In this document: one piece after another, positions 1,223-55,848 of the stretch | Layout: every line of letters begins with the position of its first letter | Position numbering within the stretch: the stretch's first letter is position 1 | Assembly (NCBI GenBank): GCA_013416795.1 | Contig: RQSC01000062.1 | Span: 99,861 to 163,860, forward strand | Direction: 5' to 3' | Length of the DNA stretch: 64,000 nucleotides | Source of the DNA: Prasinococcaceae sp. CCMP 1430 | Taxonomy: Eukaryota > Plantae > Prasinodermophyta | The notes under the pieces: generated by a model | Database searches by the model: none | The model's input: only the letters and a program-made list of their open reading frames with translations | Told to the model about the DNA's origin: nothing | Program-made: the position numbers and the translations under genes

Positions 1223-1252
<30 letters not shown>
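1223..1252 (+). repeat. Poly-C homopolymer (30 nt)
   Basis: Directly visible. Confidence 0.95.
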
Positions 1253-1411
1253 ACCGGCGCGCAGACGCACTCGCAGCAGGCGCCGCCCTTCCCGAGCGGC
1301 GCCGACGACGGAGGGCGGCCGAGGCAGTCGCAGAGCCGCGGCGCTAGGGCGACGGCGGCCGCCGTGCAGGGGATCAATGCCGCGCAGGGGGCAAAGGGCG
1401 CGGGCGCCACC

Positions 1412-4091
1412 ATGGTGGAGAGACAGAGGGGGAAGAAGGGGCAGCGGCGCCAGTCGGCGACGCCGCCACCGACGAAGAAGCATCGCCCCGCAGCGCCCAA
1501 GTCCGCGCCCGCGAAGATGCCGCGCGCGCCGCGCGACGGCGACAACAAGGAGATGCCCATTGAGCTGAACTCGTCATCGGAGGAGGAGGGAGAGCCCGCG
1601 GGTGAGCGAGTCCGTCGCCATCGCACGCGCAGCAGCACTGGGGCGCTGGTCGAGCAACCCAAACCTTGCGAGCGCTTTGGTATCGCCCCCGAGCGTGCGA
1701 TCATGTACCCCAGCGCCGACGATCCGGACAGCATCAAGGTGAAGGGCGCCGACCTCGGCGTCCTCGAAGAGGATGAGTTCCTCAACGACACGGTGGTCGA
1801 CTTCTACATCAATTACCTCGACTCCCTCCTCGAGTTCGCTTAGTTGTCGCCCCAGCTTCCTGCGCACATGTAAAAGTTGTGGAAGAAGTTGTTCTTCGAG
1901 CTGACGCTCAAGAGCGCCGTCAGGAAGGACTCAAAGGCCACAAGGGACGAAAGGCTGCGCCAGAATGCGGCTGAGGGCGATGCTTGCAATGACAACGAGG
2001 CGGGAGGCGCCAGCGCGAGCGCAGATGCGGGCGAGGGTCCGAGAGCAGCCGGGCAGAGCGGCGGCGGCGCTGGTGGGAGCGGAGACCCCCGAGGCGACGC
2101 GTCGGACTCGGCAGATGCCCCGGACGCGCCGAACAGCGACGGTGGCGACCCGTCGCAGTCGCAGCAGTCGAATCATGCCAAAGGCTCAGCGGGCGCAGAT
2201 GCGGCCCCGGCGGTGGCCGAGGGCGCAGGCTCAGGCGCTCCGAGCGCGCCGGAGCCGTCGAAGAGCAAGGCCGAGGCCGAGCTCTCCGCCATGATCAAGT
2301 GGACCAAGTCAGTGGGTCTTTTCGACAAAGACTTCTTGTTCTTGCCTTTGAACAAGGATCTGCACTGGAGCCTGGCGATTCTCTGTCACCCCAGTGCCTA
2401 TGCCCGCGGCGCCAAGCCTGACTGCGACGACGGCGATATCGAGATCGTTGACACGGGGGGTGACGGCTGCAGCAGCGAAGTCCAGCCCTGCCTACTCCAT
2501 CTGGACTCTTTGCAACCCCACCATCAAATTGCGGACTGGAAGGCCCCACTGGTCCGGTTCCTGAACGCAGAGTGGGACGACGCGGTCGACAAACGCCGGG
2601 GCCTACCCCCGCAGCACATGGGGGCGGGATGTCAGAAGCCCGAGTTTACAACCAAGAAGCTGCCGCACATGTCTATTCCCGACCTGCCGAAGCAGCCAAA
2701 CTTCTGCGATTGCGGGCTCTTCATGCTGCACTACATCGAGCGCTTCGTGCAGAGCGCCTTCAGGCCCGTGGACGCCGCGCATCCGGATGCGCTCAAGGGT
2801 GCGTGTCGCTCGCAGCGCCTCGTGCTGACCGCCGAGACAGGCTTTGCGTGCGTGGGACTCGCGCGCGCGCGCGCGCGGGCATCGCCACTCGCACGCGTGG
2901 CTGTGCAAACCGCGCGTAGCTCTGCCCGCAAGCGAAGGTGTGGATGCTACCGCGACCGCGCCGTGTCACGCTGAGACACCCTGCTCGTTCGTACCGAATG
3001 CGAGCAGACAGTTCCTGTATGTTTTCTGGTACCGCGGCAAGGACAGCCGCGAGTGGTTCCACAAGGAGGGGGCGATGAAGCTGCGCGCCCGTATCCGCAG
3101 CATCCTCCTGTCGCTCTTCTGGGAACAGGGCGACGAGAAGGAGAAGCGGGCCATGAAAGAATTGCCCGCGTTCGAGGAGTGGCGTAAGGAGCACAAGATG
3201 CCTTGGCCGCCAGACCGCCCCAAGCCCAAGCCTCAGCTAAACGCCCGCGGCCAGCTGCCGCAGCGTGGTCAGCAGCTTCCGAACAAGCCCAAGAGGACCA
3301 TCGCAACGAAGACGACGGAGGAGGGCAAGCGAAACGCCCGTGACGCGGCAGTGCGCGCAATGCAACACGCTGGCGACCCATCGCGCAAGCGAAAGGACAA
3401 GGCGTGCAATCCAGGGGTGAAAAAGTTCGTGACCGACACCGCGCGGTCTGCCGCGGACAGGCGCCGCTCGCGCACGACTCGGCAGGGTCACGAGCAGGAC
3501 AAGACGCTTGCGCACGACCACCACCAGCAGCAGCAGCAGCGGCGCGCATGGCGAGGCGCAACAGTTGGTGACACGGCGGATGCAGAGTCTGACGAGGGGT
3601 CGCCGCCTCCGAAAAAGCCGAAAGTGCAAACGCTGGGCCAATCGTCGTCGGACGATGACGACGGCATCGACATTCAGGACGAGGAGGACGACGTCTGCGA
3701 TAATAAGCGCGTGCCCCAGCCTCAGACGTTCAGCAAGACACGTTCGCAGCAAGCCAAGTCGCCCGCAGCTGCCAAGAAGGCCCTTCACAAGACCCTGGCC
3801 AAATTAATGAAGCCGGACCCACCCGTGGGTTCAAAGCCGCGCTCCGACGAGCGCGGCTCGCGCAGCAAAGCACCGAGCAAGCCTCTTCAGTCCATCAACG
3901 AGGATCCCTGGGACGTCCGGGGGGGCGGCAGCGTGGCAGCGTGTGGGCCTGCTGGCACCGACACAAATGCTGCCGCTAGTTTGCTGCGCGCGAGTGCACA
4001 GCTGCCCTACCAAAAGCCGGAGCTTCAGGTCGTCCTAACAGCGGGGTGCGTGGAGCAGTGGTCTCATGGTGAAGAGGGCAGCCCCGCGTAG
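1412..4091 (+). CDS. Ulp1/SENP family (peptidase C48) SUMO protease, ULP2-like; interrupted by a complement-only segment at c.1835-1900; probable intron 2799-2919
   Basis: FLNDTVVDFYINYL, DFLFLPLNKDLHWSLAILC (His), LLHLDSL (Asp), PKQPNFCDCGLFMLHYIERF (Gln/Cys). ORFs 710..1843 and 1877..2974 are in the same frame. An alternative upstream in-frame ATG lies at 1124. Confidence 0.85.
1835..1900 (+). other. Complement-only (non-reversed) coding segment inside the ULP gene
   Basis: The complement of 1841-1900, read left to right in the gene frame, is atc aac agc ggg gtc gaa gga cgc gtg tac att ttc aac acc ttc ttc aac aag aag ctc = INSGVEGRVYIFNTFFNKKL. The literal + strand has in-frame TAG (1841) and TAA (1871). 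Confidence 0.85.
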
Positions 4092-4253
4092 CCTCCTCAC
4101 CGGGGGGGTGACGGGCAGGGACGTCGGAAAGTCCAATGATGAAGCAGGGGGCACGAAGAGACGCCCCTCGCGCTCCGGGCGCGCAAGCGCATGCTCGATT
4201 GTACATTTTTGTTACTATACGTACAGATGTGAATTGGTTATTACTTTTGCCGG

Positions 4254-5598
4254 TCAGTTCCACTCGAGCGCAGCCCTGTCCTTCCAGTACCTCGCGCTGT
4301 CCTCCTTGCACTCGACCAGCAGCCGCTCGAGCGCGTCGGGCGCACAGCGCTGCAGCGCCTCCATGGCCTGAGGCGCCTGCGCGTTGGAGCGCGCGTGCGC
4401 CCGCGTCGCCGCGCCGCTGAGCACCACTGGCGCGCAGTCCAGCGCCATCGCCGCGCCCATAGCAAGCGCGTCGGGCGGCACGCCCAGCGCCGCTGCCGTC
4501 TCCCGAAGCGGCCCGCTCCGCAACACCCGTCCGTTCGCCATCGCCTCCTTGATGATCACGCTCATGCCTGCCTCGCCAGCTTCGTCCAGAGCCTGGGGGG
4601 GGGGAACATACGTGCGCGCGCAGGGTCGAGAGCGGGCGCGCACAAGCGCGCAACTGGCGGGTCAGAGCGCGCGGCAGGCCAAACGATCGAGACGCCGGCA
4701 GCGTCGCACCAACGCAGAGCACGCACCTCCCCCGCGCTTTGCTCGAGCACATTGTAGGTGGCCTGCACGCAGTCGAACAGACCTGGCGCGCGGCGCAGCG
4801 CCTCGCGCAGCGTATCAGCCTGCGCGGTGCCGCTCAAGGTGAGGCCCAGTTTCCAGCCACGGGCACTCTTGAGCTCGCCGAGCTCTTGCAAGACGTCCGC
4901 GTCGAGGAAACCACTATCGAGCGTCGCCGAGTGCACTTGGTAGAGAGCGACGTGATCCCCTAGCAACGCAACGCTCTCTTGCACCTGCGCGCGCAGGTTC
5001 GTGACGGAGTGCTACGCGCGAGAAGAGAGGGCGCACGCACAAGATAGGCAAGAAAATAGAGAGCCAGGGTCAGTCTCACAGACGTTGCTCGGGGAGCTGC
5101 GCGGACACTTCGCAGTGGTCACCGACATCGACGACACACCTCCTTGACCTCGTGCGGCTCGCCGTCCGTGTCGACGCGCCAGCCGGCGGTGTAGCGGTAG
5201 CCCCACTTCGAACCGACAATAACGTCGCCCCTGCGTAGGCCACGCGCGTCGAGCCAGCCTGCGAGGAATGCCTCAGACAGGCCGTACGAGCGCGCAGCAT
5301 CGAAGTAGCGCACACCGGCGTCGTACGCCTCGTCGAGCACGGCATAGCAGTGCTCGCGCATGGCGGCCTCACTGCGGTCCGCGCCCAGCGCGGCAAGATC
5401 CTCGCCCCTGCCGAGGTTGATATAGCCTGGCCTGCCGAGCGCGGCGAGGCCGAGGCCGACGCGTCCGCACGCGCCAGCGGGGAGTGGTGCGCCCAGGAAG
5501 GCGTCGGCGGCGCGTACGCACTGCCGGCGCGTGTACCCGCCGCGTGGCGTGGCCGGCCGCCCCACCGCTACGCGCGCCACCCCGCCGAGCGCGCTCAT
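4254..5598 (-). CDS. Aldo-keto reductase; introns 5012-5139 and 4593-4726
   Basis: GLGLAALGRPGYINL, YFDAARSYGLSE, SKWGYRY, LYQVHSAT, VQATYNVLEQ. GT-AG introns join the frames. Confidence 0.9.
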
Positions 5599-5928
5599 GG
5601 CCGCCGTCGCGATGGCAGATCGCCGATGTCGCTATTGGCGCGCCTGTAGACACAGGACCACCTGCGCTTGCACCTACCCCTGGGCCTGCGCCGCCCGCGC
5701 CTCGGCCTGGGGCTAGGCCCGCGTGCTCGCGCCGTGCTCGCGCTATGTCGCCATCCACCAAAACGGTTTCTCCGAGCAATCTCTCTGGAAAAAAGTGGGG
5801 CGCCCTCGCGCGCACACGCGGGTGTTCCCCCCAGCAGCGTGCTCGTGCCACACTGGGCAAGTGCGTACGCGCTCGCCCCGGCCCCTGTGGGGGAGCGAGG
5901 CTGCGCCCGCCTTCACCCGCCGTGCGCA

Positions 5929-7932
5929 ATGGAGGCCGTGTGGACGCGCGTCGACGCAGCGGGCGCCGCACCAAGCTCGCGCAGCGGACACACGCTCACG
6001 GCAGTCGGCGGCGATGGCAAGGGTGCCCTCGTCGTGCTCTACGGCGGCACAGACGTCCGCCGCAAGGCGTACTTAGGCGACGTGTGCGTGCTGGACGTGG
6101 CGAAGAATGCGTGGATAGAGACCCCGCTTGGCGCGGGCTCGGGCGTCTACGCGGGCGATGGGCGCGTGGAGCCTGCCGAGGATGCCGAGCCAACAGCGCC
6201 TCGCGTGGCAGGCGGCAGCATGGGCGCAGGTGCGGCCGCTGGCAAGGGTGGTGGCAGTGGCGAAGTAGGAAGCGAGGAGAGCTCTTCGAGCAACCCAACC
6301 CATCCGGGGGAGCGCGCATTTCACTGTGCCGCCGCGCTTTCTGGCACGCGCATTACTGTCTTCGGCGGCCGCAAGGGTCGCACGCGCTTCAACGACACGT
6401 GGCTGCTCGACACGTGCGAGTGGGCGTGGCGCAGGCCGCGAGTGTCGGGGCCGCTTCCGGCCGGGAGGGACTTTGCGGCCGCGGCAGCGTGTGGCAATGA
6501 CGATGCCGATGGTGACCGCCTGGTCGTATATGGTGGCTGGGACGGCGCGGGTTGGCTCGGAGACGCGTGGTTGCTGCACCTCTCGGCAGACGGCAAAGAA
6601 GGGACGTGGCAGACGCTTTCGCTCGGCTCGCCGGCGCCGGCGCCTCGTAGTGGCCACGCGCTCTTGGCAGGTACTGAACAGAGCCGGAGACTGTACATAT
6701 TCGGCGGGGGTACCTCCAGTGGGGCGCTGCTCAACGACTCGTGGAGCCTTGACGTCGAGCCGGATGGCACAAGCGCATGCGCAAAACTGCCAGCGTCTGC
6801 GCCAACCCCGCAGGGCCGGAGTGGTCACTCGATGTCGCGCCTCGGCCCAGTCATGGTCTCGTTTGGCGGGCATGGCACGAGTGGCTGGCTGCAGAAAACG
6901 GACAAGTACATGGATTTTGTGTGGCTCTACGCGCTGCCCACCCTGCGGTGGAGCCACGCGGCTTGCAAGCAGTCCGGGACTGCCTCGCCGGCTGCTCGAG
7001 CATACCACGCGTCGGCTTCCGTCGGCGGACGCGTGCTCATATGTGGCGGCTACGATGGCAAGGCATCGCTTGATGATTGCTGGTGGTTGGCCCTGAGAGA
7101 CGGCGAAGCCGCGTCAGTGCAGGCGTCCGCCTCGCAGCCCGCCGCGCCAGCTCCGCATGGACAGCTCACAAAGGCTATGTCGCAAGCACATGAGAAAGGG
7201 CAGCAGCGGCAACAGCAACAGCAACAGCAGCAGCAGCAGCAGACGCAGCAGCAGGTGGGGAGTCAGGAGCAGGGGGCTTTATCGGCGCCAGCGCCTCAGC
7301 CTCAGGTGCAGGCGCAGCAGCAGCGCGCGGACAAGTCGCGCTCCACGTCGTTCTTTTCGACGCTGGCTGGCAATTTGAGCAAGGCCATGCCCATATTTGG
7401 CGGGGCTTCGGGCAGTTCCGCGCAGCAGCCTCAGCCACAGCGGCGCGAGACCGCGACGGTCACGAAGGGCGACGACACGGAGAGCGCCAAGGCGCGTGCA
7501 TGGCGAGACCTGCGCCGCAGAGCTGGCCTCGAGCAGCGCCCGCAACGCCCGTCGGCGCCGCGCCTGGCGCCTCCAGCGGCGCCAACCGCCGCGCTGGCTG
7601 CCATCGGCCGCCGTGTTTCGTCGCAAGTGGGTGGGCCCGTCAGCGAGCAGAGCGCCGACGAGGACGCTGCCATCGGGCGCGCCTACTTGTTGTCGTGTGA
7701 TCCTGATGATCTCGCTCTTGATGAGGTCGGAGTGATGCTCTCGGATTATCGTCGAGCTGTGTGGGGCAAGTCCCCGGGCCCAGCCGTCGGCGACGACGGG
7801 AGCATGGCCTGGCAGGCCGAGCTTTCCACAACCATGCAGTTTGTCAACGCGGACGTGGCATCACTCCATCTCGTGGATGTTGAGATGCTGCAGATGGCCT
7901 ACAGCTCGGTGTACAGCTCGGTGGCTTGCTAA
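5929..7932 (+). CDS. Kelch-repeat (beta-propeller) protein with Q-rich C-terminal region
   Basis: About 6 kelch repeats (PSSRSGHT..LYGG, PAPRSGHA..IFGG, RSGHS..SFGG, RAYHAS..ICGGYDG). Confidence 0.85.
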   Translation: MEAVWTRVDAAGAAPSSRSGHTLTAVGGDGKGALVVLYGGTDVRRKAYLGDVCVLDVAKNAWIETPLGAGSGVYAGDGRVEPAEDAEPTAPRVAGGSMGAGAAAGKGGGSGEVGSEESSSSNPTHPGERAFHCAAALSGTRITVFGGRKGRTRFNDTWLLDTCEWAWRRPRVSGPLPAGRDFAAAAACGNDDADGDRLVVYGGWDGAGWLGDAWLLHLSADGKEGTWQTLSLGSPAPAPRSGHALLAGTEQSRRLYIFGGGTSSGALLNDSWSLDVEPDGTSACAKLPASAPTPQGRSGHSMSRLGPVMVSFGGHGTSGWLQKTDKYMDFVWLYALPTLRWSHAACKQSGTASPAARAYHASASVGGRVLICGGYDGKASLDDCWWLALRDGEAASVQASASQPAAPAPHGQLTKAMSQAHEKGQQRQQQQQQQQQQQTQQQVGSQEQGALSAPAPQPQVQAQQQRADKSRSTSFFSTLAGNLSKAMPIFGGASGSSAQQPQPQRRETATVTKGDDTESAKARAWRDLRRRAGLEQRPQRPSAPRLAPPAAPTAALAAIGRRVSSQVGGPVSEQSADEDAAIGRAYLLSCDPDDLALDEVGVMLSDYRRAVWGKSPGPAVGDDGSMAWQAELSTTMQFVNADVASLHLVDVEMLQMAYSSVYSSVAC

Positions 7933-8069
7933 TTCTGGTTGTGATCGCGCACGGACAGCTGCGCGCAGGCGGGCGCGTTCGGACCCACTTTCCCCGATTA
8001 TTAACTCAGATTGTCATGTGATGCTAGAGATGTAGACCTTCAGGTAGACGGACAGCCGCTGCTGGCTAG

Positions 8070-11000
8070 CTAGAATGTCGCTTTGATCTTGATTGACTTC
8101 TGCGCTGCGAGACTGCTGGGGTGCCTAGCACCATCCCTCTCCGTCGGCGGCAGCTTAATCCCCGCCAGCTTGTTGTCGGCAACTCGTCTGATGTGCGAGT
8201 CCTCGCCTGAGAATTCGTTGACGTACAGCGAGTGCGTGTCCAAGTACTGCAGATCGTTGGTGTCGTCGTTGCGGCGCACAACGTAGCGGAAGTTGAGCAC
8301 GGTGGGCGGGTCGGAGCCGGTCTCATACAGGAAGCCGGTGGGAAATATGGGCTCGCCCGGCAGGCCCGTCGTCGAATTGTCGTTCATGCCGTTGGTATCG
8401 TCTATCGTGACGAGCACGAGCTTGATCTGCGCGCACACGCGGTAGTAGAGGCCCATGTAGTGTTCCTGGAACACCCACTGGTCGTTGTCGGCGCCGCAGG
8501 ACGCCTTGACAGCCTCAGAGAAGTGCACCTTAACGTCGATCACGTCGGGCACGCCGGCTGAGTTGTCGCCACCAGTGTTGATGCCATAACCGGTGTTGTA
8601 GCCGTAAGTGGTATCGTGTACATCCGAGGTGACGTTCTGCACATATGCGCGCCCAATAACGAGATCCTTGTTGTACGAAAGCGACTGCGTCGCGCCGTGC
8701 GAACCCAGCATGGCGCCGCCTGGCTTTGGCAGCGTCAGGAGCGCGTCGTTGAATTTGCAGCGCGAGTAGTCATTGTTGTACACGTTCTTGCGGCGCACAT
8801 AGGCCGTGGTCACGTCTACAGTGAAGGACAGGCTCGAGAAGTTCGGTGACGACACGCCGCACGACGCGCCGCTCACCGCGCCCGATCCCGAGTAGCCGGT
8901 GGAGACGCCAGGCACGGCGCATGTGGTTACACCAAGCGTGATCCGGTCGCCGGTGACGGACACGATTGTGTACTTGCCGTTGACAGTGCCAGCGTCGGTG
9001 CCGCCCACGCCTGCAATGTAGATGATGTCGCCGGCAAGCAGGGTGTGCATGGCAGCGACCGAGCCAGATGTCTGCGGCGAGGCGTGGCTCACGAGCGTGA
9101 GCACGGCTGGGTCGGCGGCAGTGATTTCGCTCACTTGATAGTGGTCGGCACACGCACGCTTGATGGTCGCATTGCCGCCGTCGAGGTCGAGCGCGTCGGT
9201 GCCAGTGTAGTCGAGGTCAGCGCTCAGGTGCGTCTGGCCCGAGGTGAGCGCGAGGGCGCCGACGTTCTGGTCGTAGCCGTCCGCGCCACCTGCACCGCGT
9301 GCACCTGTCTGCACCCTGTACTCAAACGCCAGAATGTTGTCCATGGACTGTTCTATGCGCTCCTCGTCGAATTGGCGCTCTCGGCGCAGAGAGCTCACAG
9401 TGTTTCCGCCGTCGAAAGCCAGCCCCGTGGAGGTGTAGGTGTCGCTCGAGAAGGTGCAGTAGTGGTTGCCATGCGCCGAGGCGTCGGTCAGCCCGCCGCC
9501 CTCGAGGCTGTGCGAGCGACAGCGAATGCCCGTGTTGACGCGCTGGATGGTGACCGCGCTCGACTCGGGCGTGTCGTGGTCGCTGCCGGGAGTGTATCGC
9601 GCGCCGGCAATGTAGCCTGAGCCCGGCGGAACTGAAGTCTCCGAGCCACCCAGCCTTCCCGTGTAGAACGTCAACCCGCTGATGTCCAGCGGGGGCTCCA
9701 GCGAGAACTCCCATTTGGTGACGTGCGACCCGACCGTGAACTGCTTGTTCAGCGAGTCAGCGTCCGGGCCGTAGACGCCTCGGATGATGACGATGTCGCC
9801 TGTGGAGAGCGTGTGCGTCCCGCGCACCTTGAAGACAGTGCCCACTGTCGAGGTGTCTGCGCTGGTGCATCCCTCACTGGAGGAGGCGCACACGCCATCG
9901 GCGAAGAGCTGCAATGGGTCCTCCATGGCGGAGTTGTCCGTGTGAGCGTCATTGCTCAGCCCAGGGCTTGACGCAAACTCGCCGTACCTGCGCTGATTGG
10001 CCAGCGAGTACGCCTCCTCGCCCTTTTTGAGCGGGTTTGGCTCGTTGTTCTTCCAGAAGGCCTTCTTCTCGCCGAAGCCGCCGCCGGCGTAGGTGGCGTA
10101 GTGGTCCGCCGCGCCAGCCTCAAAGTGCGAGCCCAAGTCCAGCTTGAGCCGCGGCGAGCCGTACACGACCACCGGCTCGGAGAAAGTCACGAAGATGTAG
10201 ATGAGGTCGTCCTCCTCGTATGACCAGTCGTGCTCGCCGTGTGCGGGATTCGGCACGGCGTTCGTGGGCGTCGGCTGGCGCAGCACAAACGCAGAGCTCA
10301 CGTCCCAGTCCATGCCCGTCGAGTCGAGCGCTGCGCCAGTGGCCACATTCTCCAGCGTGAAGGTGGTTGCGTGCAGCAGACCATTCGCGTCGTTGCCGTC
10401 CCCGTCGGCCGTACCGCTCACGTCGGTCACCTCGAACTCGATGCCATTAATTGAGTGTCTGTCTAAACCCCGGACGCTCTCGATCTTCACGCGGTCTCCC
10501 ACCTCGAGTGAGTGCGTACCAACCGTGGTGACGGTCGCATCGGCGCTCGATTGCTCCACAGATCCAATCTGGAAGATGTTGCGGTACTGATAGTTGTCCG
10601 CGCGGCGGTTAGGCGAGTACGAGGTCACACCCACAACGAAGGGTTGGATCTTGAGGTGCACGCGGTCCACCGAGCCAAGGCTCGGATAGGCATCGAGGGA
10701 GATCTGGAGGTCGTCACGGCAGTGCGAGAACGCGCAGCGAGCATCGCGATGCAACGCAGCGGTGCTCAGCGCGCCGCTCGCCTTGTCGAGGCCGAGGCGA
10801 TCGTGTTGGTTGATGCCTGCGTACGGGCCTGATAGTGTGCCCTCGCCCGAGCTGGCAAGGCCGAGCGCGTCGCCCGCGCCGCGCCTCGAGCGCACGCGGT
10901 TCGCGGGCTGCACAACCGAATTGATGAGCGCGGCCTCCCAGTAGCCCCCCGCGAGCGTCACGTGCGTGTGGCCGCTCTGGCGACCCTGGCGCACCTCCGG

Positions 11001-11981
11001 CCCGCTCCGGGGCTCATCCAGGCGCTGCGGCAGGTTCTCCCATCCCACCCACCGCGTGTTGCCGCCGCTCACCGACAGCGCAAGGAGGGAGCGCGCAGCG
11101 GATCGCGCAGCCCCGTCGGCCCCGACGCCGTCGCTGCGGACCGCCTCGAAACCGGCGTCCATCGACAGCAGCGAGCGCACGCTTTCGCCTGCGCCTGCTG
11201 CTGCGCCGAGCAGCTCGTCGGCGAGTGCAAGCTCCTCGTCTGTCGGCACGACGCTAGCTGCAGGGGCGGGGGCGGAGGTGGCACCCTCCACATCCTCCGC
11301 GTGTGCGCCCCGCCTGCCTGCCCCACCGGACGCGCACCCGCCGCCCTGCGGCTGCTGCTGCTGTCTCGGCTGCTGGGGCTGCACGTGCCGCCGCTGCTGC
11401 TCCTCCGGCTGTTGCTGCTGCTCCCCGCGCCGCTCGTCTGCACCACCCTCGACCGCCACCGCGCGCTTGAGCATACCCACGATGCCGCCGCTCTGGCCTG
11501 TTGCCTCGTCGTTCTCGGCCTGCGCGGCGGCGCGGCGCTCGGCGGCGCGTACCGCCGCGTCCGAGGCGTCTGAGCGCGCCGCCGAAGCACTCGCGGGCGC
11601 GCCGCTCCCNNNNNNNNNNNNNNNNNNNNCGCGCCCCGCGCCCCGCGCCGCGCGCGCGCTCGCGCGCTCTTCGGCGGCGGCGGTGGAGCGAAGCAGGCCA
11701 AGGGCAAGGGCGCGCCGCAGAAGAGGGGTCGGGCGAGCGCCAAGGCCACCGACGAGGATGTTCCGTGGTACATCAGCAAGTGCGTGTGAGCGCTCCGTGC
11801 GCGCCGCCTGTGCGCGCTGCGTTTGCCCGTGCGTGACTCGCTGATGCGGTGGTCCCTCGCTGCGCCCCCCCCCCTCTCCCTCACGCCTCCTACGGTTCGG
11901 ACCGTCCGCAAACGCACACCAAACGCACGCAACGGAAAGGGAGCGCCATAAATTCCGCGAACTCTGTTTTCTCCCTTCCAT
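8070..11981 (-). CDS. Giant probable surface/secreted protein with two bacterial-type Ig-like repeats and three inserted FCCH-like beta modules; 5' end uncertain (spans N gap)
   Basis: Open frame 8070..12599. Motifs VTFSEPVVVYGSPRLKL / LAFEYRVQTG / SADLDYTGTDALDLDGG / LTLPKPGG..SLSYNKDLVIG, and a second copy VHFSEAV..LNFRYVVRRNDDTNDLQY. Three H-x-L-x-x-GD-x-[VI]-x-I-x-x-V-x-G modules. Confidence 0.7.
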   Translation of the reverse strand: MEGRKQSSRNLWRSLSVACVWCAFADGPNRRRREGEGGGRSEGPPHQRVTHGQTQRAQAARTERSHALADVPRNILVGGLGARPTPLLRRALALGLLRSTAAAEERASARAARGAGRXXXXXXXGSGAPASASAARSDASDAAVRAAERRAAAQAENDEATGQSGGIVGMLKRAVAVEGGADERRGEQQQQPEEQQRRHVQPQQPRQQQQPQGGGCASGGAGRRGAHAEDVEGATSAPAPAASVVPTDEELALADELLGAAAGAGESVRSLLSMDAGFEAVRSDGVGADGAARSAARSLLALSVSGGNTRWVGWENLPQRLDEPRSGPEVRQGRQSGHTHVTLAGGYWEAALINSVVQPANRVRSRRGAGDALGLASSGEGTLSGPYAGINQHDRLGLDKASGALSTAALHRDARCAFSHCRDDLQISLDAYPSLGSVDRVHLKIQPFVVGVTSYSPNRRADNYQYRNIFQIGSVEQSSADATVTTVGTHSLEVGDRVKIESVRGLDRHSINGIEFEVTDVSGTADGDGNDANGLLHATTFTLENVATGAALDSTGMDWDVSSAFVLRQPTPTNAVPNPAHGEHDWSYEEDDLIYIFVTFSEPVVVYGSPRLKLDLGSHFEAGAADHYATYAGGGFGEKKAFWKNNEPNPLKKGEEAYSLANQRRYGEFASSPGLSNDAHTDNSAMEDPLQLFADGVCASSSEGCTSADTSTVGTVFKVRGTHTLSTGDIVIIRGVYGPDADSLNKQFTVGSHVTKWEFSLEPPLDISGLTFYTGRLGGSETSVPPGSGYIAGARYTPGSDHDTPESSAVTIQRVNTGIRCRSHSLEGGGLTDASAHGNHYCTFSSDTYTSTGLAFDGGNTVSSLRRERQFDEERIEQSMDNILAFEYRVQTGARGAGGADGYDQNVGALALTSGQTHLSADLDYTGTDALDLDGGNATIKRACADHYQVSEITAADPAVLTLVSHASPQTSGSVAAMHTLLAGDIIYIAGVGGTDAGTVNGKYTIVSVTGDRITLGVTTCAVPGVSTGYSGSGAVSGASCGVSSPNFSSLSFTVDVTTAYVRRKNVYNNDYSRCKFNDALLTLPKPGGAMLGSHGATQSLSYNKDLVIGRAYVQNVTSDVHDTTYGYNTGYGINTGGDNSAGVPDVIDVKVHFSEAVKASCGADNDQWVFQEHYMGLYYRVCAQIKLVLVTIDDTNGMNDNSTTGLPGEPIFPTGFLYETGSDPPTVLNFRYVVRRNDDTNDLQYLDTHSLYVNEFSGEDSHIRRVADNKLAGIKLPPTERDGARHPSSLAAQKSIKIKATF
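11610..11629. other. Assembly gap (20 N)
   Basis: N run. Confidence 1.
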
Positions 11982-12448
11982 CTCCGCTGCAGTCAATCCC
12001 CGTGGCACCGAAATGAAATGCTCGACCCTCGACAGCTGGCACAACCGACATGTCGGTCGGTGGGCACAACGGGTCTGAGAAACGCCAGTACAGATCAAAA
12101 GCAATGTCGCGGGCACGGCCTGGCCATGATGCCATGGCCATGGCATGGCCATGGCATGCCGCCATGCGCAAGAGAGGCTGCCCTTGGTATCGCCGCGCCC
12201 GGCCTCGATCCCGCGTGGCACGGCACCAAGGGCGAGCTGCCCTTCACCAACTCGACCGCACGGCGGCGCGCGGCGGCGCGCTTTCCGAAGCGCTCGGGCG
12301 AGGGGCGCTGCGGCGCCCGCCTGGAGCAGGTTGCCACGGGCGCGGCGTAGAGGTCTTAGGATCGAGGAGGGGGTTGAGTCGGGTGTGTGGGGGCGCATCG
12401 TCCACGGTGCCCGCCGCGTGGGAAATGGGTGTGGCAGAAACCGAGTGA

Positions 12449-13446
12449 ATGGACGGCTCGAGCGAGCACAGCGGCGCCGGCGCCGGCGCCGCGTCCGCGA
12501 GCTTCCTCCAGCAGCGCCACGGGGCACTCTCGCCCGCGGCGGATGGCACGGAGCTCGCGGCAGGTGAGCAGCAATCGGCACAAACACAAAGCGCGCCACC
12601 TCCGCCGCTAGCGCGTGCAGACAGTGCGGTTAAGCGCATGCTCGAAGTTCCCGTGTTTGATGGCGCCGGCACCTCCGGCAGGCACGGCGTGTTGCCGATC
12701 ATCTCGCCGGCAAGCGCAATGGAGCTAGCGCGGAGGCTGGAGGATGCGGCCAATGCACTGCTTTCACCACCACCACAGCCACCACCGAAATCCCCATCGA
12801 AGCAGGGTGCGGCAATGCCCCTCATGCCACCGCTGCCCAGGGCCGTCGCAGGTATCGGCAGTAGTGGGAAAAGGTCCGCGCGCCCACCGCCCCTCGCGAG
12901 CAGTCCAGCAGTGCGGCCCCCGCCACTGCCGAGGGATGCACGTAGGGTGAGAGAGGGAGCACCCGAGCGCTCTCCTGCACCTCTGGCTGCCTACGGAGCC
13001 GATACGTCACCGAGCGGCGATGCGTCGCCCATGACGCCTGTCGGTGAGGCTCTTTTGGGTCCTGTCGAGGAGGTCGAACGAGCGCACGTTGGTGAGCCGG
13101 CTCAGCAGCATTTGCACGAGTCATCTCGCCACCGCAGGGAGTCACTGCGGCAGCGGCAGCAGACCGGAGAGCAGCGAGGGCAGCAGCAGCAGCAGCAGCA
13201 AGGGCAGGGGCAGGGGCAGCAGGGGCAGCAGCAGCAAGGGCAGGGGCAGCTTACCGAGCAGCAAGTGCTGCATACGGAGCAAGAGCAGCCTGAAATGAGG
13301 GAAGAATTGCCATCGCAGGAAGCGACTGCACGGCGAGGCCGCCTGCGAGACAGACGAGAGATCTTCGAGCGCTTTGATGCAGCTGTTGCGCAGCCAGCGC
13401 CAACCCCTCCGCCCATAAACCACAGCAGCAGCAGCAGCAGCAGGGG

Positions 13447-13483
<37 letters not shown>

Positions 13484-15385
13484 GCCGGCAGCAGCAGCAG
13501 GGGCAGCAGCAGCAGCGGCAGCATCAGTGGACTTGAGCACCTGGATGACGGTGACAGCGTTCGGAACGGGGCATTCGGTGCCGATGAGGACGAGCCCACG
13601 ATGGCGGAGCGTGACGCCGCTGAGCAACGTCTCCTTGCCGCCGCGTCGTCGGTGCCCGTGCCGCGCGAAGCCCTGCTACCACAGCGCGAGGCGAACCCCG
13701 CTCCGACCGCGCCCGTATCCCTGGCTGCCGCTGACGGGTACTCGTCACCGCTACCGGTTCCACGCGTCGTGGTGCCGCCGCGGCGCGAACCAAGCCCGAT
13801 GCCGCTGCCCCGTGCGGATGAACCCCCGCTGCAGACAGAAGAGAACGAGTGGCCCGCGGCGTGGGCATTCATGCGCTCGCCCGAACGCCTGCGTGGGGAC
13901 AGAGCGCGGGGCGCTCAATCATTGAACTCCCCGCTGGGATCGCCGGGCGATGCGAGGGGGGCACCGCCGACTGTTCCTCGGGGTGGCAGGGCGGTGCCAC
14001 CCGAGCCAATGAGCCCGCTCGACCTCGATCACGACGCTATTCTGCACTCGCCGCGCCTGCGCGAGGCGGCCGGCCGGGGCGATCAGACACGCAGTTCGGC
14101 GGCTAGAATGCAGGTGGCCGCCGTGCCTTTGTCCGATGAATCTGAAAGCGAGTCATCGCGCGCGGAGGCGGCACCGCCACCTCGAGGGGACGTCATGGGC
14201 AAGGACGCCCCGGGTGAGTCGGAAGCATCGGCGTCGGATGGAGACTCTGATGAGATGTGGGGAGAGGAGGTCCATCTGGAACTTGCCCCTGCGGTCACTG
14301 GGCGCCCGGATGGCCGCGGTCGTGTGGGGTCTCGGCAGACCATAGATCCCTCAGCAAGGTCTGGGCGCGGCGTAGAACGCGGCCGAGGCGCAACCGCTGC
14401 CGCGCGGCGTACGCGTGCTCTTGAGAGCTCCTGCGCGAATGACGACGCGGATGACACAGACGTTGCGAGCGAGACCGCCGCGGAGGCCCCGGTACAGGCG
14501 CAGGCCGGGTTGGCAAACTCGGACGAAAGCTCGCCTGATGCCGCATCTGTGGCATCCTCGCTTCGAACCAATGCTCTGTACGACGAGGACCAGGACGACG
14601 GCGGGGACAGCGCAGCGGGCGCCAATGAGTCGGTTGAAAGGGGCAGTGCGGATGCAGAGGATGGGCGCACCCTTGCTGTACTCCCGCTGCGCGGTGCGGC
14701 GACGCGCAGCGCCGCAGATGTGCTGCGTGCTAGACGCAAGGGCAAAGAGAAAGCCGACTTGGAGAAGGGAAGTACCCAAGAGGGCGGAGCAGAAGAGCCG
14801 GGCAGCGACGGCGGACCTACCGATAATGGAGGAGGTGCCGGTCGTGCCGACAAACTAGGCGGTGGCAGCAGCAGCGGTGGTGGCAGCGACAGTACCAGCA
14901 ATGGCACCTTCACGAACGAGGCGTTCGACTCAAGCAGCGCCATCGAGGAACAGGAAGGGCGGATCTGGGAGCTGGAGGGAGCTGTCGCACGCGGCCAACT
15001 CGAGATCGAGGAGCTTCGGAAGGCGCAGGCGGAGGAGGTCTCACGGATGGCTGCCGCTCACCGGACATCAATCGCGTCGATCAACGCAGCGCAGCGCGAC
15101 CAGCGCCGCCTGCTGGCCAAGTCAGAGTCGGCCCGCGAGCATGCGCGTAAGCAGCACGCCACGCTGCTGCAGCAGCTCGAGATTCGCGACGACGAGGCGC
15201 TCGCCACGCGCCGGCGACTCAAGGTGGAGCGCAGCCGCGCGCAGGCGCTCGAGGAGGCGCTCGAGACGGCTCAGAGCGATGCCGCGCGCCTCTACCAGAG
15301 CCTGGCGTCCCTGCGGAGGGCCTTCGGCGTGCTCATGTGCGCCTGTGCGGCCGTCGGGCTGCGAGTCGTGCTCGGCCCTCGTTAA
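12449..15385 (+). CDS. Hypothetical low-complexity protein with C-terminal coiled coil and hydrophobic tail
   Basis: 978-aa intact ORF with Q/S/P-rich tracts, a heptad-like region [20 protein letters not shown]...[10 protein letters not shown], and terminal [17 protein letters not shown]. Confidence 0.7.
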
Positions 15386-15651
15386 AACAAGCGTACAGTA
15401 ATGAATGCCAATTTCATCTCATGTCTCTGCGCCCGCATGCACCCCTTCCATTCCGCTCCCACACACACGCGCACGCGGGCGCGCATCCATCGCTCTTCAA
15501 TTTCGCGTATTATGTCACATCGAATCGGATTATGTGGTTTTGGAAGAACTCATTTCGAAGTCAAAATGATCGGGGTCTGTATTGAATTTTTGCGTGCGTT
15601 TTGACGTGCGGGCGCGCCGTCGGCCCGCACACGCCGCGCGCGCGTTCAAAT

Positions 15652-15660
15652 TTTTCGCGC
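15652..15660 (+). promoter_or_regulatory. E2F-like site (TTTTCGCGC) upstream of CAP-H2
   Basis: Matches TTTSSCGC about 180 nt upstream of a cell-cycle gene. Confidence 0.35.
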
Positions 15661-15840
15661 GCGCGCACCCTCGAGACACGCCCCTGGGTGTGGGTGTGGG
15701 TGCGGGACGGGAGGGGGGGGGGGCAGGGCGCCCCACACCGTGCGGCCCGCGCGCGTCCGCGCGCGCAGCCGCCACAGCCCCACTCCCTCCCGCGAGAGAG
15801 GGGCCGGGGCGTGCCGCGCCGCGCCGCTTGAATCGCGAGG

Positions 15841-17937
15841 ATGTCGCAGCGCCCGAGCACACGCCGCGCGGCCGACGCGGAGGATGACGCAGCGGCGCGC
15901 TTCAAGCACCTCATCGAGCCTATCCGCGACCTTGCCAAGAACTGGAACGTCGACGTCGCGTCCGAGCTTGAGGACTACATCGGCGAGCTCGAGTCCATAT
16001 CGTTCTCTGCGGACGGCGGTGTGACACAACTGAACTTCGCTGAGGCCGCGCTGCTCATCCAGGGCAGCGCGTGCATCTACTCAAAGAAGGTCGAGTACCT
16101 CTACGAGCTCGTGTTCCAGGCGATCAACTTCATCGAAAAGCGCAAGAGGAAGGAGAGGGAGGCGGCCAAGCTCGGTTCGAGCGTCAGTGCGGATGGCGCC
16201 GACAAGGACGTGGACCCCCTCGACGAGGACGAGCTCGATTTCCTCATGCTCGACGACGACATCCCCGAGGCCGAGGAAAGGGCCATCAACATGCGCGAGA
16301 AGGACCTGGAGATGGAGACGTGCCCACCGCCGACGGCGTACCGTCCAAAGTTCCCGTGGCTTCTGCGCCAGGCCACCGACCGTGGCGACGGCGAGTACAA
16401 CCTGAGCCAGATGCACGTTCACCGCTCGGGCGCGCTGCTGCTCGACCAGGGTGACATCAAGGCGCTCGACGACAACCTGGAGCCCGTCGCACAGCCCAAC
16501 TTTGAGGACATTAACGCCGCCGGTGACTTCGGTGCGGGTGGATACGACGACGACGACGACTTCGGCGACGGCGGCAGCGGCGACTTCGGTGAGGGTGGTG
16601 CGCCCGGCGAAGCCCCTGCCAGCGGCTACTGGGTAGCGCAAGAGCGCGCGGCAGGAGGGAACGTGCCGCCGACGCCGGCGCTGACCTTGCATGGCGAAGA
16701 TGAGGAGGAGTACAACCCGTACGAGCCGCTGGATGCCGACGACGCCAAGGGCGTGGGCAAGCTCACCGTGCGGCCCTTCCGGAAGGGGCGCACGCAGCTC
16801 AGCAAGTCGGCTATCGAAGGCGAGCCCGTCGGCGCCTCGCCCGCGGAGGGCGTGTCGCGCAGCGGCGTCGACCATGGAGTGCGCGTGTCCGCCGCGCCGA
16901 CGGCGCCGACGGTGCTGTCGCAGCCCGCCTTCAAGGAATTCTCGTTCGCCTTCGAGGCCGCGCGGCGGGCCGCGCGCGCCCTGCGGAGGGCGAATGCGCG
17001 CCGCCTTAGTGGGCTGTCGCCGGGTCCTGGCCAGCGTGCGGCCGAGCTCACGCCCGGAAGCCGCGCGGCGGCATTTGACGCGCCCGCGGCGCAGGATGAT
17101 CCCGGCTACGAGGACGACATGCCCGACTTCGGTGGCGGTGGAGATGACTTCGACGACGACGTGGATGGCGACATGGGTGCTTTCCCCGATGTTGGCGAGC
17201 AGGGGGCAGCGGGCACGTTTGGCTGGCTTTCCGGGGACGGCAACAACGCGGCCGCGCTGTCCACGCCGCGCTCGGCCTCGGCAGCGGTGTCGTATGCCGA
17301 GCTGGTGCGCGCCAAGGTGGACGAGCTGCTGGCGCGCACACTGGCGTCGGAGCGCGTGACGGAGCTCTCGCGGCGCGTGACCAATTGGCGTGACCAGATC
17401 GAGCCCGCGCTTGAGGAGGAGGAGAAGGCGGCGGCTTTCGACATCCACCAATACGGCGACGGCGTGCTCAGTGCGGTGGCCATGGACGCCAAGACGGGCA
17501 AGCGCAAGGCCGACGACGTCGTTCGTGGCACCAAGATCGATTTCGCCGACGTCTTCGCCGCCGCGCGCCGCGCCAAGGTGGACGAGGCCACGTCGCGCGG
17601 CGAGGATCCTTCGACGGCGGGGGCGGGCACCGAGGCCGGCGAAATCGCGCGCACTTTTGCGGCGACGTTGCAGCTCATCAACGACGGGGCGCTGGAGATT
17701 GAGGCGATCGTGGATGACAGTGAGAGTGAGGTTGGAGAGGGCGGTGCGGGGGCTGCGGACGCCGGAGTGGCGAAGAGCTTCAAGATCACGGTGCTTAACC
17801 CACACAGGCAAGAAATCACCACCGCGTATGACCAGATCGATGGGGGGGAGAATGTCGCGGCGCAGGCAGAGGCGAAGAAGCGCAAGGGCTCGAAGCGCGC
17901 AACTGCGGACACCGCCTTGCGTGAGACACAGGCGTGA
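15841..17937 (+). CDS. NCAPH2: Condensin II kleisin subunit CAP-H2
   Basis: [52 protein letters not shown]; C-terminal FDIHQYG and [14 protein letters not shown]. Confidence 0.95.
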
Positions 17938-18091
17938 GCATGCCTGCGTGCGCGCGCGCGTGCGGCGGGCGACATTGGCTAGGCGAGACGAGTAACCAAA
18001 GATAAAACACAAACGGGCGCAGCGGGCGATCGGTCTCAGAGTACACGTGAATTTACAAGGCGGCGTGCTACAACTCGCAAGGGAGCCACCC

Positions 18092-18655
18092 TCATTGAGC
18101 GTCGAGATGCAGCTTCTTGTACTTTGCCGCGCGCTGGGCGGCCGAGCGCGCCTGCTCAGCAGCGCGCCGCGAGTCGGGCAGCGAGCACGCGAGCGTCGCG
18201 CCGACGTACGCGTCCTGCAGCCACTGGCCGTGCATCTCGAGCAGCTTGCCGCCCTCCTTGATCTCAGCGACGCCGCAGCCATGCAGCTGACCCGCGCGCC
18301 AGCGCCCGCACACCTTGCTGCCATCGTCAAACGTGTGGCAGCCGGCGCCGTGCGGCTTGTGGTCGTGGAACTCGCCTTCATAGCACCCGCCCGCAGCGTA
18401 CCAGAGCGAGCCGACATTCTCGGCCTTGCCGTCCTGCGCCCGGCGTGGGTGCGCGCAGGGGAGAGGCGGCGGCCGATCGTCAGGGAGTTAGCGGCAAAGC
18501 TCGTGGCTATGGTCGACGCTGCTACACGCATGCGCCCTCCTCACACGCACCTTTGTGTGGCCGTCGTACCGGCTGCCGTCGCGGAAGACCAGCTCCTCGA
18601 AGCGCAGCGCCCCACCGCCGCCGCCCGTCGTCGCCGCCGCGGCTTTGTGCGCCAT
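18092..18655 (-). CDS. MORN-repeat protein; exons 18551-18655 and 18092-18433
   Basis: FRDGSRYDGHTK|DGKAENVGSLWYAAGGCYEGEFHDHKPHGAGCHTFDDGSKVCGRWRAGQLHGCG; phase-0 GT-AG intron. Confidence 0.85.
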
Positions 18656-19302
18656 CCCCCCTCCCGAAGCACACGCCCTCCCTCCCCCCTACACCTCGCC
18701 CAGATCGCGCGCCGCGCGCCGCGCGCCGCGATTCGCCGCCCACGCCCTGCGATCGCACGGCGCCCGCGGCGCGCTCGCAGCACCAGGCGGCCGCCGTCCG
18801 CAAGAGGGCACGCACGCACGCGTGCGCTGTGTGGGCCACCCCTCGCAACACCCCCGCCGCAGCCCGCGCCGCGCCGCTGGCTGGCACGCCGCAGGCGTTC
18901 TCGTGCCTTCGTTCTGATGGCGCATAGAAAGCTCGCCCGTGGGCAAATGACTCTGTTTCCAGGGGCCCCGCGTCAGAGACTTCTCCATCGAACGCGCGCA
19001 CATGCGTGCGGCCGTGCCTGGCGTGCCAGCGTGTTCAGGATCCCAGGCGCCCCCGAACCCTATCCGCTCTCACAAAGACCGGGTCATCCCATGGCTGTAC
19101 CGGATATGCACGCGAAAATTGGCTGCAAAGACCGGGGTCAGACCCGATTCAGGCCGGGGTCGGCGTGTCCGCGCGCGCGCCGCCCTTGGGCACGGGCCGC
19201 AAAAGCGATTCGAAACTGGCGCGCGCGCGCCGCCAGCCTCGCTGCAGCGCGCCCTGTCCGCCGACGATGCCACTCCTGCCCCGCCTAGCGGGCGGGGAGG
19301 AA

Positions 19303-19335
<33 letters not shown>
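19303..19335 (+). repeat. Poly-G homopolymer (33 nt)
   Basis: Directly visible. Confidence 0.95.
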
Positions 19336-19336
<1 letters not shown>

Positions 19337-19379
19337 GAAGGTGTGCAGGGGGCGGCAAGAAGGAGGAGGGGCAGAGGCG

Positions 19380-21551
19380 ATGGCGCCCGAGGTTGGCGCA
19401 GGCTTGGGCGTGGGCGCGCGGGCGCGTGCGTGCCGCGTGCACGTGGACGTGCCAGTCGCAATCGGCGAGCGCGGGCGGGGCGTGTTCGGCGGCATAGGTG
19501 GCACCAGCGCGGGCGGCGGCAGCGGCGCCGCCGAGAGACGGGCGGCACGCGAGCGACGCGCCGCAGCGCACGCCGCTGAGGTGGCGCGGCTCGCCAAAGC
19601 AAAGCTCGCGCGGCGCGCGCACAAAAACACGCGTGTCGGCAAGACCAAGGCGGCGCACACGCAGAAGGCGCGAGCGCCGCTGCAGACGCTGAAAGAGGCC
19701 TGCGAGGAGAAACAGAGGAGAGCACACGGAAAGAGGAGGTCCGCCGCGGGCCGTGCTCTGCGAGCGTGGGCGGCGTATGCCGAGGCCGCGCGCTCGCACC
19801 GCGCGGCAGCTCTCGTGGCGTGGAGGGTACACTGTCGCGAGCAGCAAAGGCGTGGGTCGCAGGCGCCGCGTGACCTGCAGGCACGCGCGCGCGTGCCAAG
19901 CGACCGTGCCGGCGCTGGCCCGGACTCGGACGTCTGCGGCGATTCTTTCGAGGCGGTGTTGGACTCAGCGCCCCCGTCCTCGGCATACACAAGCCCAGAC
20001 TCAACGCACGGCGCGCGCGCGCACGGCAGCAGGGGTGAGGGTGAGGGCGCACCGAGCGGGCGGCGGCTAAGCGACGCATCCGTCTCGGATGCCAGCGCCG
20101 CGGAGGCGTTCTCGCCCTCGAAGAGCTTGGCGAACGTGAGCACTCTTGCGGCCGCGCTCACGCCAGGACTTTCGCCAGCGACGATCGGGCGCGCTGGTCC
20201 TGGGACGTTGGCGCATATGAGCGTGGACTGCAGCACCGACCCTGGCCGCGCGCGCGCGCCCAGGCCTTCCACGGCGCCCTCAGTCGCTAGTTCGGAGGAA
20301 CGCGGCGAGCGCCTGATGGCCAGCTTGCGACAGAGCGATCCCTACCTGTACCTCCTGTGCGAGGCACGCGCTGGGAACGCAGGAAGCGCGCACACGCTCA
20401 CTCCAGCGCAGGCGACCTCGGGGGGCAGCACGCGGGGCGCGCTCGCAGACGCCGGGGGTGCAGCAGAAGCCTCGACCAGAGCCGGCGCATCCACAAGAGC
20501 ACCAGACGCATCGAGCGCCGATGCGAAGGCGTTCGGCGGTGGCGTCCCCGTGAGCGCTGACCGTCTTCGTGCTTCGGAAATGAGCGCATGTGCAAGCCGC
20601 GACCAAGTCTGCGACTCCCCAGCTCGCCACGCGGCGGTGGCACAGTGGCTACAGTCCACGACGCCGCCCAAGGGAGCCAACGCCGCTGAGGATGTCGCCA
20701 GACAGATGGATGAGCCCGTGTGCGTTGGCGCAGACTATGTGGACGAGGCGGAGTTTTGGATGCTTGAATTGCAAGCAGAGCGCGTCAGTGGCGCCAACGA
20801 TGCTTCTGCGGTGCAAGCCACGCGCGCACAAGCGCTGGCAGCAATGGTGGTGCACCTCGCGCGACGTGCGGGAATGCGGCGCGCAATGCTTCGCTGGATC
20901 GCTGCCTTGCATTCTGCACAGGAGGAGCTTGTTGTCATGACGCTCGCGGCGGGCACGGCTGCGTGCGCGCAACGCCGTGCACGCATCGCCTTGAGGAAGT
21001 GGTCGCGGGCATCACGCCGCTCTCATCTGGCGCACGCGTTGCACATGCACGCCTCAGCGGCGTTCCATTGGCGGATGACGTCGCAGGCGCGTGCGTGGCA
21101 GGCTTGGACAGCTGCAGCCGTTTGTGGTCGCGGGGATGCCGAGGGGACGGTGCACTTAGCGCCAGCGCTGAACAGATTCAGTGCGCGTGCGCCTGCTGAC
21201 CGAGGCGGCCGAGACGCTGACCTCGCTGGGCGAGCGCGTGGGCGCGCGCCTGCGACCCTCATGCAGCGGCAGGCGCTGTGGCGTTGGCGCACGAACGCTC
21301 TCCGCGCCAGGGCAGTGCGAGTGGCGTCCGCGCGTCGCAGCATGGATGTAGCGCGAGGGACGTTACTCGCATGGCTGCGCGTTGCGATGCTCTCCACCAT
21401 CGGCCCGACCTTGTCTGCAATTTGGCTCGGCCGCCGCTGCCGCTTGGCGCTGGTCAAGTGGCACGCACTCGCGCGCGCGCCGGCCAACGATGCGCACGCT
21501 GCACTTGCCGAGTGCGATGCGCTGCTCTTCAGCCTCAATCCGTCGGTCTGA
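19380..21551 (+). CDS. Hypothetical protein with Trp-spaced basic helical repeats (SFI1-like?)
   Basis: Intact ORF with recurring A/L-x-x-x-W motifs (RALRAW, AMLRW, ALRKW, AWQAW, ALWRW, LLAW, LVKW). Confidence 0.55.
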   Translation: MAPEVGAGLGVGARARACRVHVDVPVAIGERGRGVFGGIGGTSAGGGSGAAERRAARERRAAAHAAEVARLAKAKLARRAHKNTRVGKTKAAHTQKARAPLQTLKEACEEKQRRAHGKRRSAAGRALRAWAAYAEAARSHRAAALVAWRVHCREQQRRGSQAPRDLQARARVPSDRAGAGPDSDVCGDSFEAVLDSAPPSSAYTSPDSTHGARAHGSRGEGEGAPSGRRLSDASVSDASAAEAFSPSKSLANVSTLAAALTPGLSPATIGRAGPGTLAHMSVDCSTDPGRARAPRPSTAPSVASSEERGERLMASLRQSDPYLYLLCEARAGNAGSAHTLTPAQATSGGSTRGALADAGGAAEASTRAGASTRAPDASSADAKAFGGGVPVSADRLRASEMSACASRDQVCDSPARHAAVAQWLQSTTPPKGANAAEDVARQMDEPVCVGADYVDEAEFWMLELQAERVSGANDASAVQATRAQALAAMVVHLARRAGMRRAMLRWIAALHSAQEELVVMTLAAGTAACAQRRARIALRKWSRASRRSHLAHALHMHASAAFHWRMTSQARAWQAWTAAAVCGRGDAEGTVHLAPALNRFSARAPADRGGRDADLAGRARGRAPATLMQRQALWRWRTNALRARAVRVASARRSMDVARGTLLAWLRVAMLSTIGPTLSAIWLGRRCRLALVKWHALARAPANDAHAALAECDALLFSLNPSV

Positions 21552-21663
21552 CTTCTGACTGTACCATACAACCTCGCTGCAATTTTTTTAATCAAACACG
21601 TTCGACACAGCAGCCCTGTTCGAAGGAGCTAGAACGCCGACGCCACTGGTGCGCGCATTGCGC

Positions 21664-27080: not shown

Positions 27081-27190
27081 NNNNNNNNNNNNNNNNNNNN
27101 NNNNNNNNNNNNNNNNNNNNNNNNNNNNNNNNNNNNNNNNNNNNNNNNNNNNNNNNNNNNNNNNNNNNNNNNNNNNNNNNNNNNNNNNNN
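27081..27190. other. Assembly gap (110 N)
   Basis: N run. Confidence 1.
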
Positions 27191-34620: not shown

Positions 34621-34980
34621 GTCAAGCCCCCGCAGAGTGCACAGTCACTGCAAACTGTAGTCGTATAGCAAGTCTCTGACCATCTCCGGTTTTCTCTGAG
34701 TGTAGCGTGCAGTTGTCATCAGACGTTTCTTGTACAGTACAAGTTTTGACCAGCCCGGGGGACAGTTCCCCAACCGCCGCGCGGCACCGGCGTGCGCGCG
34801 ACGCGCGGGCGCACGCGCGGGCGGACGCGCGTGGAGGGCGCACGGGGACGTGCCTGCGCAGGCGTGCGCGGGTGAAGTCCATTCTTTGGCTCTGACGTAC
34901 TCCGAATGGCGTGCCACCGGAGACCACACCGCGGGCGCCGCGGCTCGGGGCGCAGAGTGCAGCTGCCCCGGGCCGGCGCG

Positions 34981-37900: not shown

Positions 37901-38412
37901 GCGACAACGAGGAGTGCGGCTACGACGGCGGCGACTGCCAGTGCCATCCCAACTGCCCGTACACTTCGTGGATCGGCGACGGCGTGTGCGGTGCGTCACC
38001 ACGCCTGTGCGCACGCTCTATAGCGCGCGCGCAGTTGAGATGCCTGAGGCAACCGTGCGCTCCGCCCTGACACGCGCGCGTCCCCGCCCGCCCTCGCACC
38101 CTCGACCCACACGCCTGCCCAATTCACTCATTGACAATCCAAACTCCCCCCACCCCCCGAAATGCAGATGCCGGATGCAACCGCAAGGCCTGCGACTTCG
38201 ACGGCGGCGACTGCGTACCGGTGGACACAGGCAAGAAGACGGAAAAGAAGAAGAAGAAGAACAAAAAGAAGGACAAGAAGAAGAAGAAGCTCTCGAAGAA
38301 GCAGGTCAAGAAGCTCTGCAAGAAAGCGAAGAAGTCGAAGAAGAAGTGCAAGAAGGGCGACGCCAAGAAGAACTGCAAGTTCAGCAAGAAGAAGGGCTGC
38401 GTCCCCAAGTAG
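34981..38412 (+). CDS. Secreted HEXXH-motif protein with 14 Notch/LNR-like repeats, His/Asp linkers and Lys-rich tail; intron 37991-38167
   Basis: Signal peptide; AVHEYTHAFQ..WLMEGGA; C-x(3-5)-C-x4-GDGxCDxxCxxxxCxWDxGDC repeats; phase-1 intron restores VC|DAGCNRKACDFDGGDC. Confidence 0.85.
36347..36828 (+). repeat. Identical 227-bp direct repeat (36347-36573 and 36602-36828; 255-bp period) encoding LNR pairs
   Basis: Base-by-base comparison. Confidence 0.9.
36823..37310 (+). repeat. Near-identical direct repeat, 249-bp period, encoding LNR pairs
   Basis: aatcactgtgatgagaacatgtgtcc starts at 36841 and at 37090. Confidence 0.85.

Positions 38413-55759: not shown

Positions 55760-55848
<89 letters not shown>

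Follow-up and report, generated by a model that had tools for sequence, protein, structure and literature searches.

The two complement-only blocks of a SUMO protease gene

The 64-kb stretch of DNA analysed here (64,000 nt; hereafter the window, in whose coordinates all positions are given) is a copy of nuclear genome sequence of the green alga Prasinoderma coloniale, eukaryotic in character and with a G+C content of ~67%. Positions 1412–4091 of its plus strand hold PRCOL_00000994, the gene for an Ulp2/SENP-like SUMO protease of the Peptidase_C48 family (ULP). Mapped onto the window after two short blocks have been complemented, the published model consists of exon 1 (1412–2798), a GT..AG intron (2799–2967), exon 2 (2968–4088) and a stop codon (4089–4091), all on the plus strand. 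The first of the blocks (1819–1905, plus strand, 87 nt) is the base-by-base complement, in the same order, of the sequence carried by wild contigs. The second (2922–3044, plus strand, 123 nt) begins 46 nt before the end of the intron, contains the AG acceptor (2966–2967) and extends 77 nt into exon 2. Across these two places, the literal text of the window includes ...CCTCGACTCCCTCCTCGAGTTCGCTTAG....

Translated as it stands, the frame from the ATG at 1412 encodes ...EDEFLNDTVVDFYINYL... and is open until a TAG at 1841–1843 (plus strand). This codon and a TAA at 1871–1873 (plus strand) fall in the frame that carries LNDTVVDFYINYL, which is then open to 2973; translation hence bears out the initial annotation, made from the letters alone, which had described a ULP frame that runs into both stops and resumes afterwards. 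Both are false stops, the true codons being ATC and ATT, each for isoleucine.

Complement-only reading restores the C48 motif

The initial annotation had further claimed that complementing the stop-containing segment without reversing it restores a conserved motif of C48 proteases, and this observation held. Complemented but unreversed, positions 1841–1900 yield INSGVEGRVYIFNTFFNKKL, and nothing resembling it emerges from the reverse-only reading or, as had already been stated, from the reverse complement of the same nucleotides. Used as query in an exhaustive HMMER search, the literal downstream piece yielded 150 C48 homologues, 57 of which fit the anchor pattern LNDxxIDFY; in 54 of the 57, [RK]x[HY][FI]FN[ST]FF[YF]KKL lies downstream of this anchor, mostly 16–21 residues on and in some cases up to 37. 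On a 15-column matrix built from these 54 independent homologues, the decoded GRVYIFNTFFNKKLL scored 34.1 bits. The runner-up among 255,824 positions—the whole window in its literal, reverse-complement, complement-only and reverse-only forms, each in three frames, hence 12 modes—reached 8.2 bits, and it is this distance that makes the complement-only observation real. The motif pair LNDxxIDFY ... [FI]FN[ST]FFxKKL is present only in the complemented reading, at a spacing of 22 residues as compared to 16–21 in most homologues. Another argument put forward at the outset, that 17 of 20 decoded codons end in G or C, proved uninformative: complementing leaves the G+C content at each position unchanged, so the count carries no weight. 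Searches for direct, reverse-complement, reverse-only and complement-only repeats revealed no source copy of block 1 within the window, the last two modes giving nothing non-trivial longer than 19 nt.

Domain searches agree with the motif. Against the Pfam profile PF02902 (Peptidase_C48; gathering score 20.7 bits), the literal C-terminal piece (1901–2797) scored 60.3 bits over profile positions 62–185, and the literal upstream piece (1412–1840) gave no C48 match. Aligning the complemented protein to the family had been suggested early on as a check; the published protein (PRCOL_00000994-RA, P0190 in our set) scored 83.2 bits over its whole length, and its residues 100–180 matched profile positions 1–58 with 26.7 bits, recovering the N-terminal part of the domain. 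The underlying gene belongs to Peptidase_C48 by its PF02902 score as well as by the N-terminal motif pair, the latter only when complemented. Inspection by eye located LHWSLA, HLDSL and KQPNFCDCGLF, which would supply the putative catalytic His, Asp and Cys and the oxyanion Gln, in the translation within the Pfam-aligned stretch. With Ulp2/SENP6-7-type SUMO proteases (MEROPS C48, PF02902) the gene has in common the order LNDxxIDFY...FN[ST]FFxKKL, followed by what appear to be the HW, D and QxxxxDCG motifs, and a catalytic domain interrupted by a long insertion; set against these enzymes, it has no unusual feature once both blocks are read correctly.

Wild relatives carry the ordinary sequence

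Protein searches with literal pieces of the gene (word-index; 1.84 billion representatives) returned only homologues of 32–48% identity and no self protein, and a metagenome scan with the literal C-terminal piece found distant relatives only. DNA for comparison was instead reached through the neighbouring Kelch-repeat gene (5668–7929), via a 99%-identical database protein whose 90% cluster has TARA and Logan members. The resulting comparators are all wild relatives, 0.5–1.5% divergent from the window in most aligned stretches, and not reads of the sequenced strain. Among them are seven scaffolds of TARA metagenomes, each from a different sample (L006–L012), which are 98.9–99.5% identical to the window over 1251/1306–11609. 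A Logan contig assembled by another pipeline (L013) spans both blocks at 98.5% identity (95.7% over 1405–2921, where its alignment runs through block 1), and a second one (L005) starts at 3155 and spans neither.

The TARA alignments break at 1819–1905 and 2922–3044 only, and each gap has the same length in window and contig. Compared position by position in the eight block-spanning contigs, window and contig bases within both gaps are complementary throughout, with a single mismatch, in L013. BLAST with complemented L006 and L012 gave 100% identity over the 87 nt and the 123 nt; with complemented L013, it gave 98.9% for block 1 and 100% for block 2. An ordinary inversion does not account for this pattern: the blocks fail to align when BLAST is run against both strands, and the complement-only query aligns at 100%. 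The wild version is stop-free, with open frames of 505–705 aa called straight through block 1. According to the initial annotation, genomic DNA carrying atcaacagcggggtc...aagaagctc directly would show an assembly artefact; eight independent contigs assembled from DNA, all of wild relatives, do carry it, as does the gene model of the same strain.

Together, the position-by-position comparison and the complemented-contig BLAST fix the true extent of block 1 at 1819–1905, with which the gene model agrees. The boundaries proposed at first (1841–1900 or 1829–1900, for a feature noted at 1835–1900 and lying inside the block) were wrong. The first base of block 1 is the third of its codon, and the peptide truly encoded there is ...INYLLREELKRINSGVEGRVYIFNTFFNKKLDWLKS.... 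The initial inventory included this block and missed the one at 2922–3044.

The published model was translated from unflipped sequence

Through the cluster of the exon-2 product, we arrived at the EukProt entry EP00793_Prasinoderma_coloniale_P005233, that is, PRCOL_00000994-RA, a protein of 836 aa. It opens with the window's MVERQRGKKG, and both LLREELKRINSGVEGRVYIFNTFFNKKLDW and, at a later point, VRLCGTSKHGLRSSVKDIQKTMAPFLSREWF are part of it. Read literally, the window matches this protein over the first 136 aa only, up to nt 1818. In a scripted, spliced translation, window and published protein are the same at 836/836 residues only with both blocks complemented; residues VRLCGTSKHGLRSSVKDIQKTMAPFL, for instance, are encoded only after complementing block 2. 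Consequently, the model was translated from sequence in which the blocks were not flipped. The '-RA' suffix follows the MAKER naming style, and as MAKER obtains its proteins by translating the assembly, the annotated sequence was free of the flips. The P. coloniale genome was produced with PacBio Sequel and Illumina sequencing, NextDenovo, Arrow and NextPolish, with gene models from MAKER (PMC7455551). A spliceosomal intron at block 1 was considered and rejected, exon 1 of the published model being continuous there; in line with this, the initial annotation had stated that no GT-AG intron removes both stops in phase.

Two blocks in the ~26 kb compared

Two further parts of the window (12256–23179 and 45183–50406) could be compared with wild contigs reached via a condensin CAP-H2 gene and another ORF. 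Both align literally throughout, without any further block of any base-swap type. With 1251–11609 included, ~26 kb were compared in total and hold only the two blocks, which lie 1.1 kb apart in one gene, with none found in the other ~24 kb; A↔C/G↔T and A↔G/C↔T blocks were likewise absent from the ~26 kb set against wild contigs. When the 64-kb window was scanned for stop clusters, block 1 alone had coding flanks, and it was also the sole match of a same-frame codon scan that required such flanks. A plain codon-usage scan for complement-coding was discarded, as it was swamped by CAG/CTG repeats and missed the true block: poly-Q reads as poly-D when complemented, which misleads a scan of this kind.

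Several other features of the window came to light along the way. Long CAG/CTG (poly-Gln) runs at 13150–13535 and 55720–55870 differ in length between window and wild contigs, and six of the seven TARA scaffolds (L006–L011) end at most 40 nt from 11609, beside a CTG-rich low-complexity stretch. Runs of N occupy 11610–11629 (20) and 27081–27190 (110). An ORF of 1054 aa (34906–38067), apparently encoding a Cys/Asp-rich repeat protein, contains an exact 227-nt tandem copy (36347–36573 and 36602–36828) plus repeats spaced by 249/255 nt (36823–37304).

Discussion

What is the nature of these blocks? Rather than a novel mode of storing genetic information, the finding is one of data handling gone wrong. 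The two blocks are almost certainly an in-silico artefact in this copy of the P. coloniale genome, and the ULP gene beneath them an ordinary, intact one of the Ulp2/SENP type. This conclusion follows from the ordinary sequence being carried both by wild DNA and by the strain's published gene model, and from our knowing of no replication, repair or recombination process that yields the unreversed complement of a DNA stretch; inversions yield reverse complements. On the other side stand the clustering of both blocks in a single gene and the origin of all DNA comparators from wild relatives. Two readings had been offered in the initial annotation, an artefact, named there as more likely a priori, and a polarity-reversed storage or decoding event; wild DNA and gene model support the former, and the latter found no support.

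How might such an artefact arise? In our view, two short blocks of a normal SUMO protease gene were swapped in place for their base-by-base complement, without reversal. The equal length, the lack of a scar and the zero mismatches against the TARA scaffolds (one against L013) are what an operation at the level of text leaves behind. If, for example, a piece from the minus strand is reversed with its bases left as they are, exactly such a block results, and viewed on the opposite strand, this block appears as a reverse-only 'mirror' block. We infer that the change was made in silico, either later than or separately from the sequence underlying gene-model prediction. It could stem from a deposited version of the assembly other than the annotated one, from later file handling, or from deliberate alteration of the scanned copy. 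A literature search on assembly artefacts of the complement-only or reverse-only kind retrieved nothing relevant.

Could the blocks instead be physically present in the alga? The culture that was sequenced might truly carry a DNA lesion left by some mutational process, with ULP turned into a pseudogene and the gene model derived from another version or source. The clustering of both blocks in one gene would fit such an event, and the DNA compared here is that of wild relatives and not of the same strain. We nonetheless regard a lesion as very unlikely: none of the known processes of replication, repair or recombination leaves an unreversed complement, the complementarity holds at every position (all but one in L013) without indel or scar, all 8/8 block-spanning wild contigs are unflipped, and the same-strain model encodes the unflipped sequence exactly. 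A broader version, in which the CCMP1413 culture carries complement-only blocks here and at many other genome sites through a process that writes a parallel-strand complement, strikes us as exceedingly unlikely.

The idea that the genome holds 'mirror-encrypted', complement-only text, from which parallel-strand copying or an A↔T, C↔G exchange at transcription would decode normal mRNA and protein, draws on complement-only reading, which restores the motif in its frame and where it is expected, and on published claims that nucleotides can be exchanged systematically, as in the contested 'swinger RNA' proposal (PMC4942731, PMC7027195). Against it, the ordinary sequence is found in environmental DNA, rather than RNA, of the same species; the gene model is itself translated genomic sequence, for which no decoding is needed; and block 2 flips intron and splice acceptor, which translational decoding would not call for. 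Taken together, we consider this idea so improbable as to be nearly excluded. An ordinary pseudogene or intron whose complement resembles the motif by chance has, in our judgement, practically no likelihood at all, given 34 bits as compared to 8 bits for the runner-up of 255,824 positions and TARA complementarity of 100% over 87 and 123 nt.

Three cases bear comparison with the in-silico artefact that we favour. Sequence-handling mistakes, in which a piece is reversed without being complemented or the converse, share with our case an in-place, length-preserving and fully complementary block with untouched flanks; the difference is that here, gene models came from the unflipped sequence. The NextDenovo, Arrow and NextPolish pipeline is not known to us to produce such flips. 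Seligmann's 'swinger' sequences are said to be systematic exchanges, A↔T plus C↔G among them, in RNA and DNA records, a proposal that is contested. They too comprise a contiguous stretch that is a bijective base exchange of its template and is chimeric with normal sequence. However, they concern transcripts and database entries, whereas in the present case, natural DNA and the gene model show the unexchanged sequence to be the real one: it is found in all eight natural block-spanning contigs, each from wild relatives. A further parallel is offered by SOLiD colour space, in which a sequence and its complement have one common colour string, and an incorrect anchor base, or two colour errors together, gives a complement-only stretch between two points. 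This candidate was rejected, as the P. coloniale assembly derives from PacBio and Illumina platforms (PMC7455551) and neither of the remaining transforms (A↔C/G↔T, A↔G/C↔T) occurs in the ~26 kb compared.

The blocks have no biological significance, the SUMO protease gene being ordinary and intact. What they do provide is a warning about data quality: if many such blocks exist in this genome copy or in a public version of it, they would give rise to false stops, pseudogenes, introns and 'mirror repeats'. Short stop-containing stretches and reverse-only or complement-only repeats in this genome should be compared with gene models or wild contigs before they are believed. That a complement-only block can be detected from sequence alone is illustrated by the first reading of this locus.

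Ocean metagenome populations represent a ready and independent check on oddities in the genome of P. coloniale CCMP1413. The TARA and Logan contigs (L005–L021; Logan SRR22824306, SRR29950796 and ERR11733668) derive from populations that are 97.5–99.5% identical to CCMP1413 in most aligned stretches, over at least 26 kb. The same contigs point to one more peculiarity of the window. A run of 30 C occupies 1223–1252 (plus strand), and the match between window and wild contigs ends upstream of 1251–1254. Beyond ~1251 (positions 1–1250), window and TARA scaffolds have nothing in common; in the latter, the ULP frame continues for at least 350–450 nt more, and the published ULP model begins only at 1412. 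This mismatch may come from a reference that is misjoined or truncated at its 5′ end, or from a difference between strains, and is separate from the flip.
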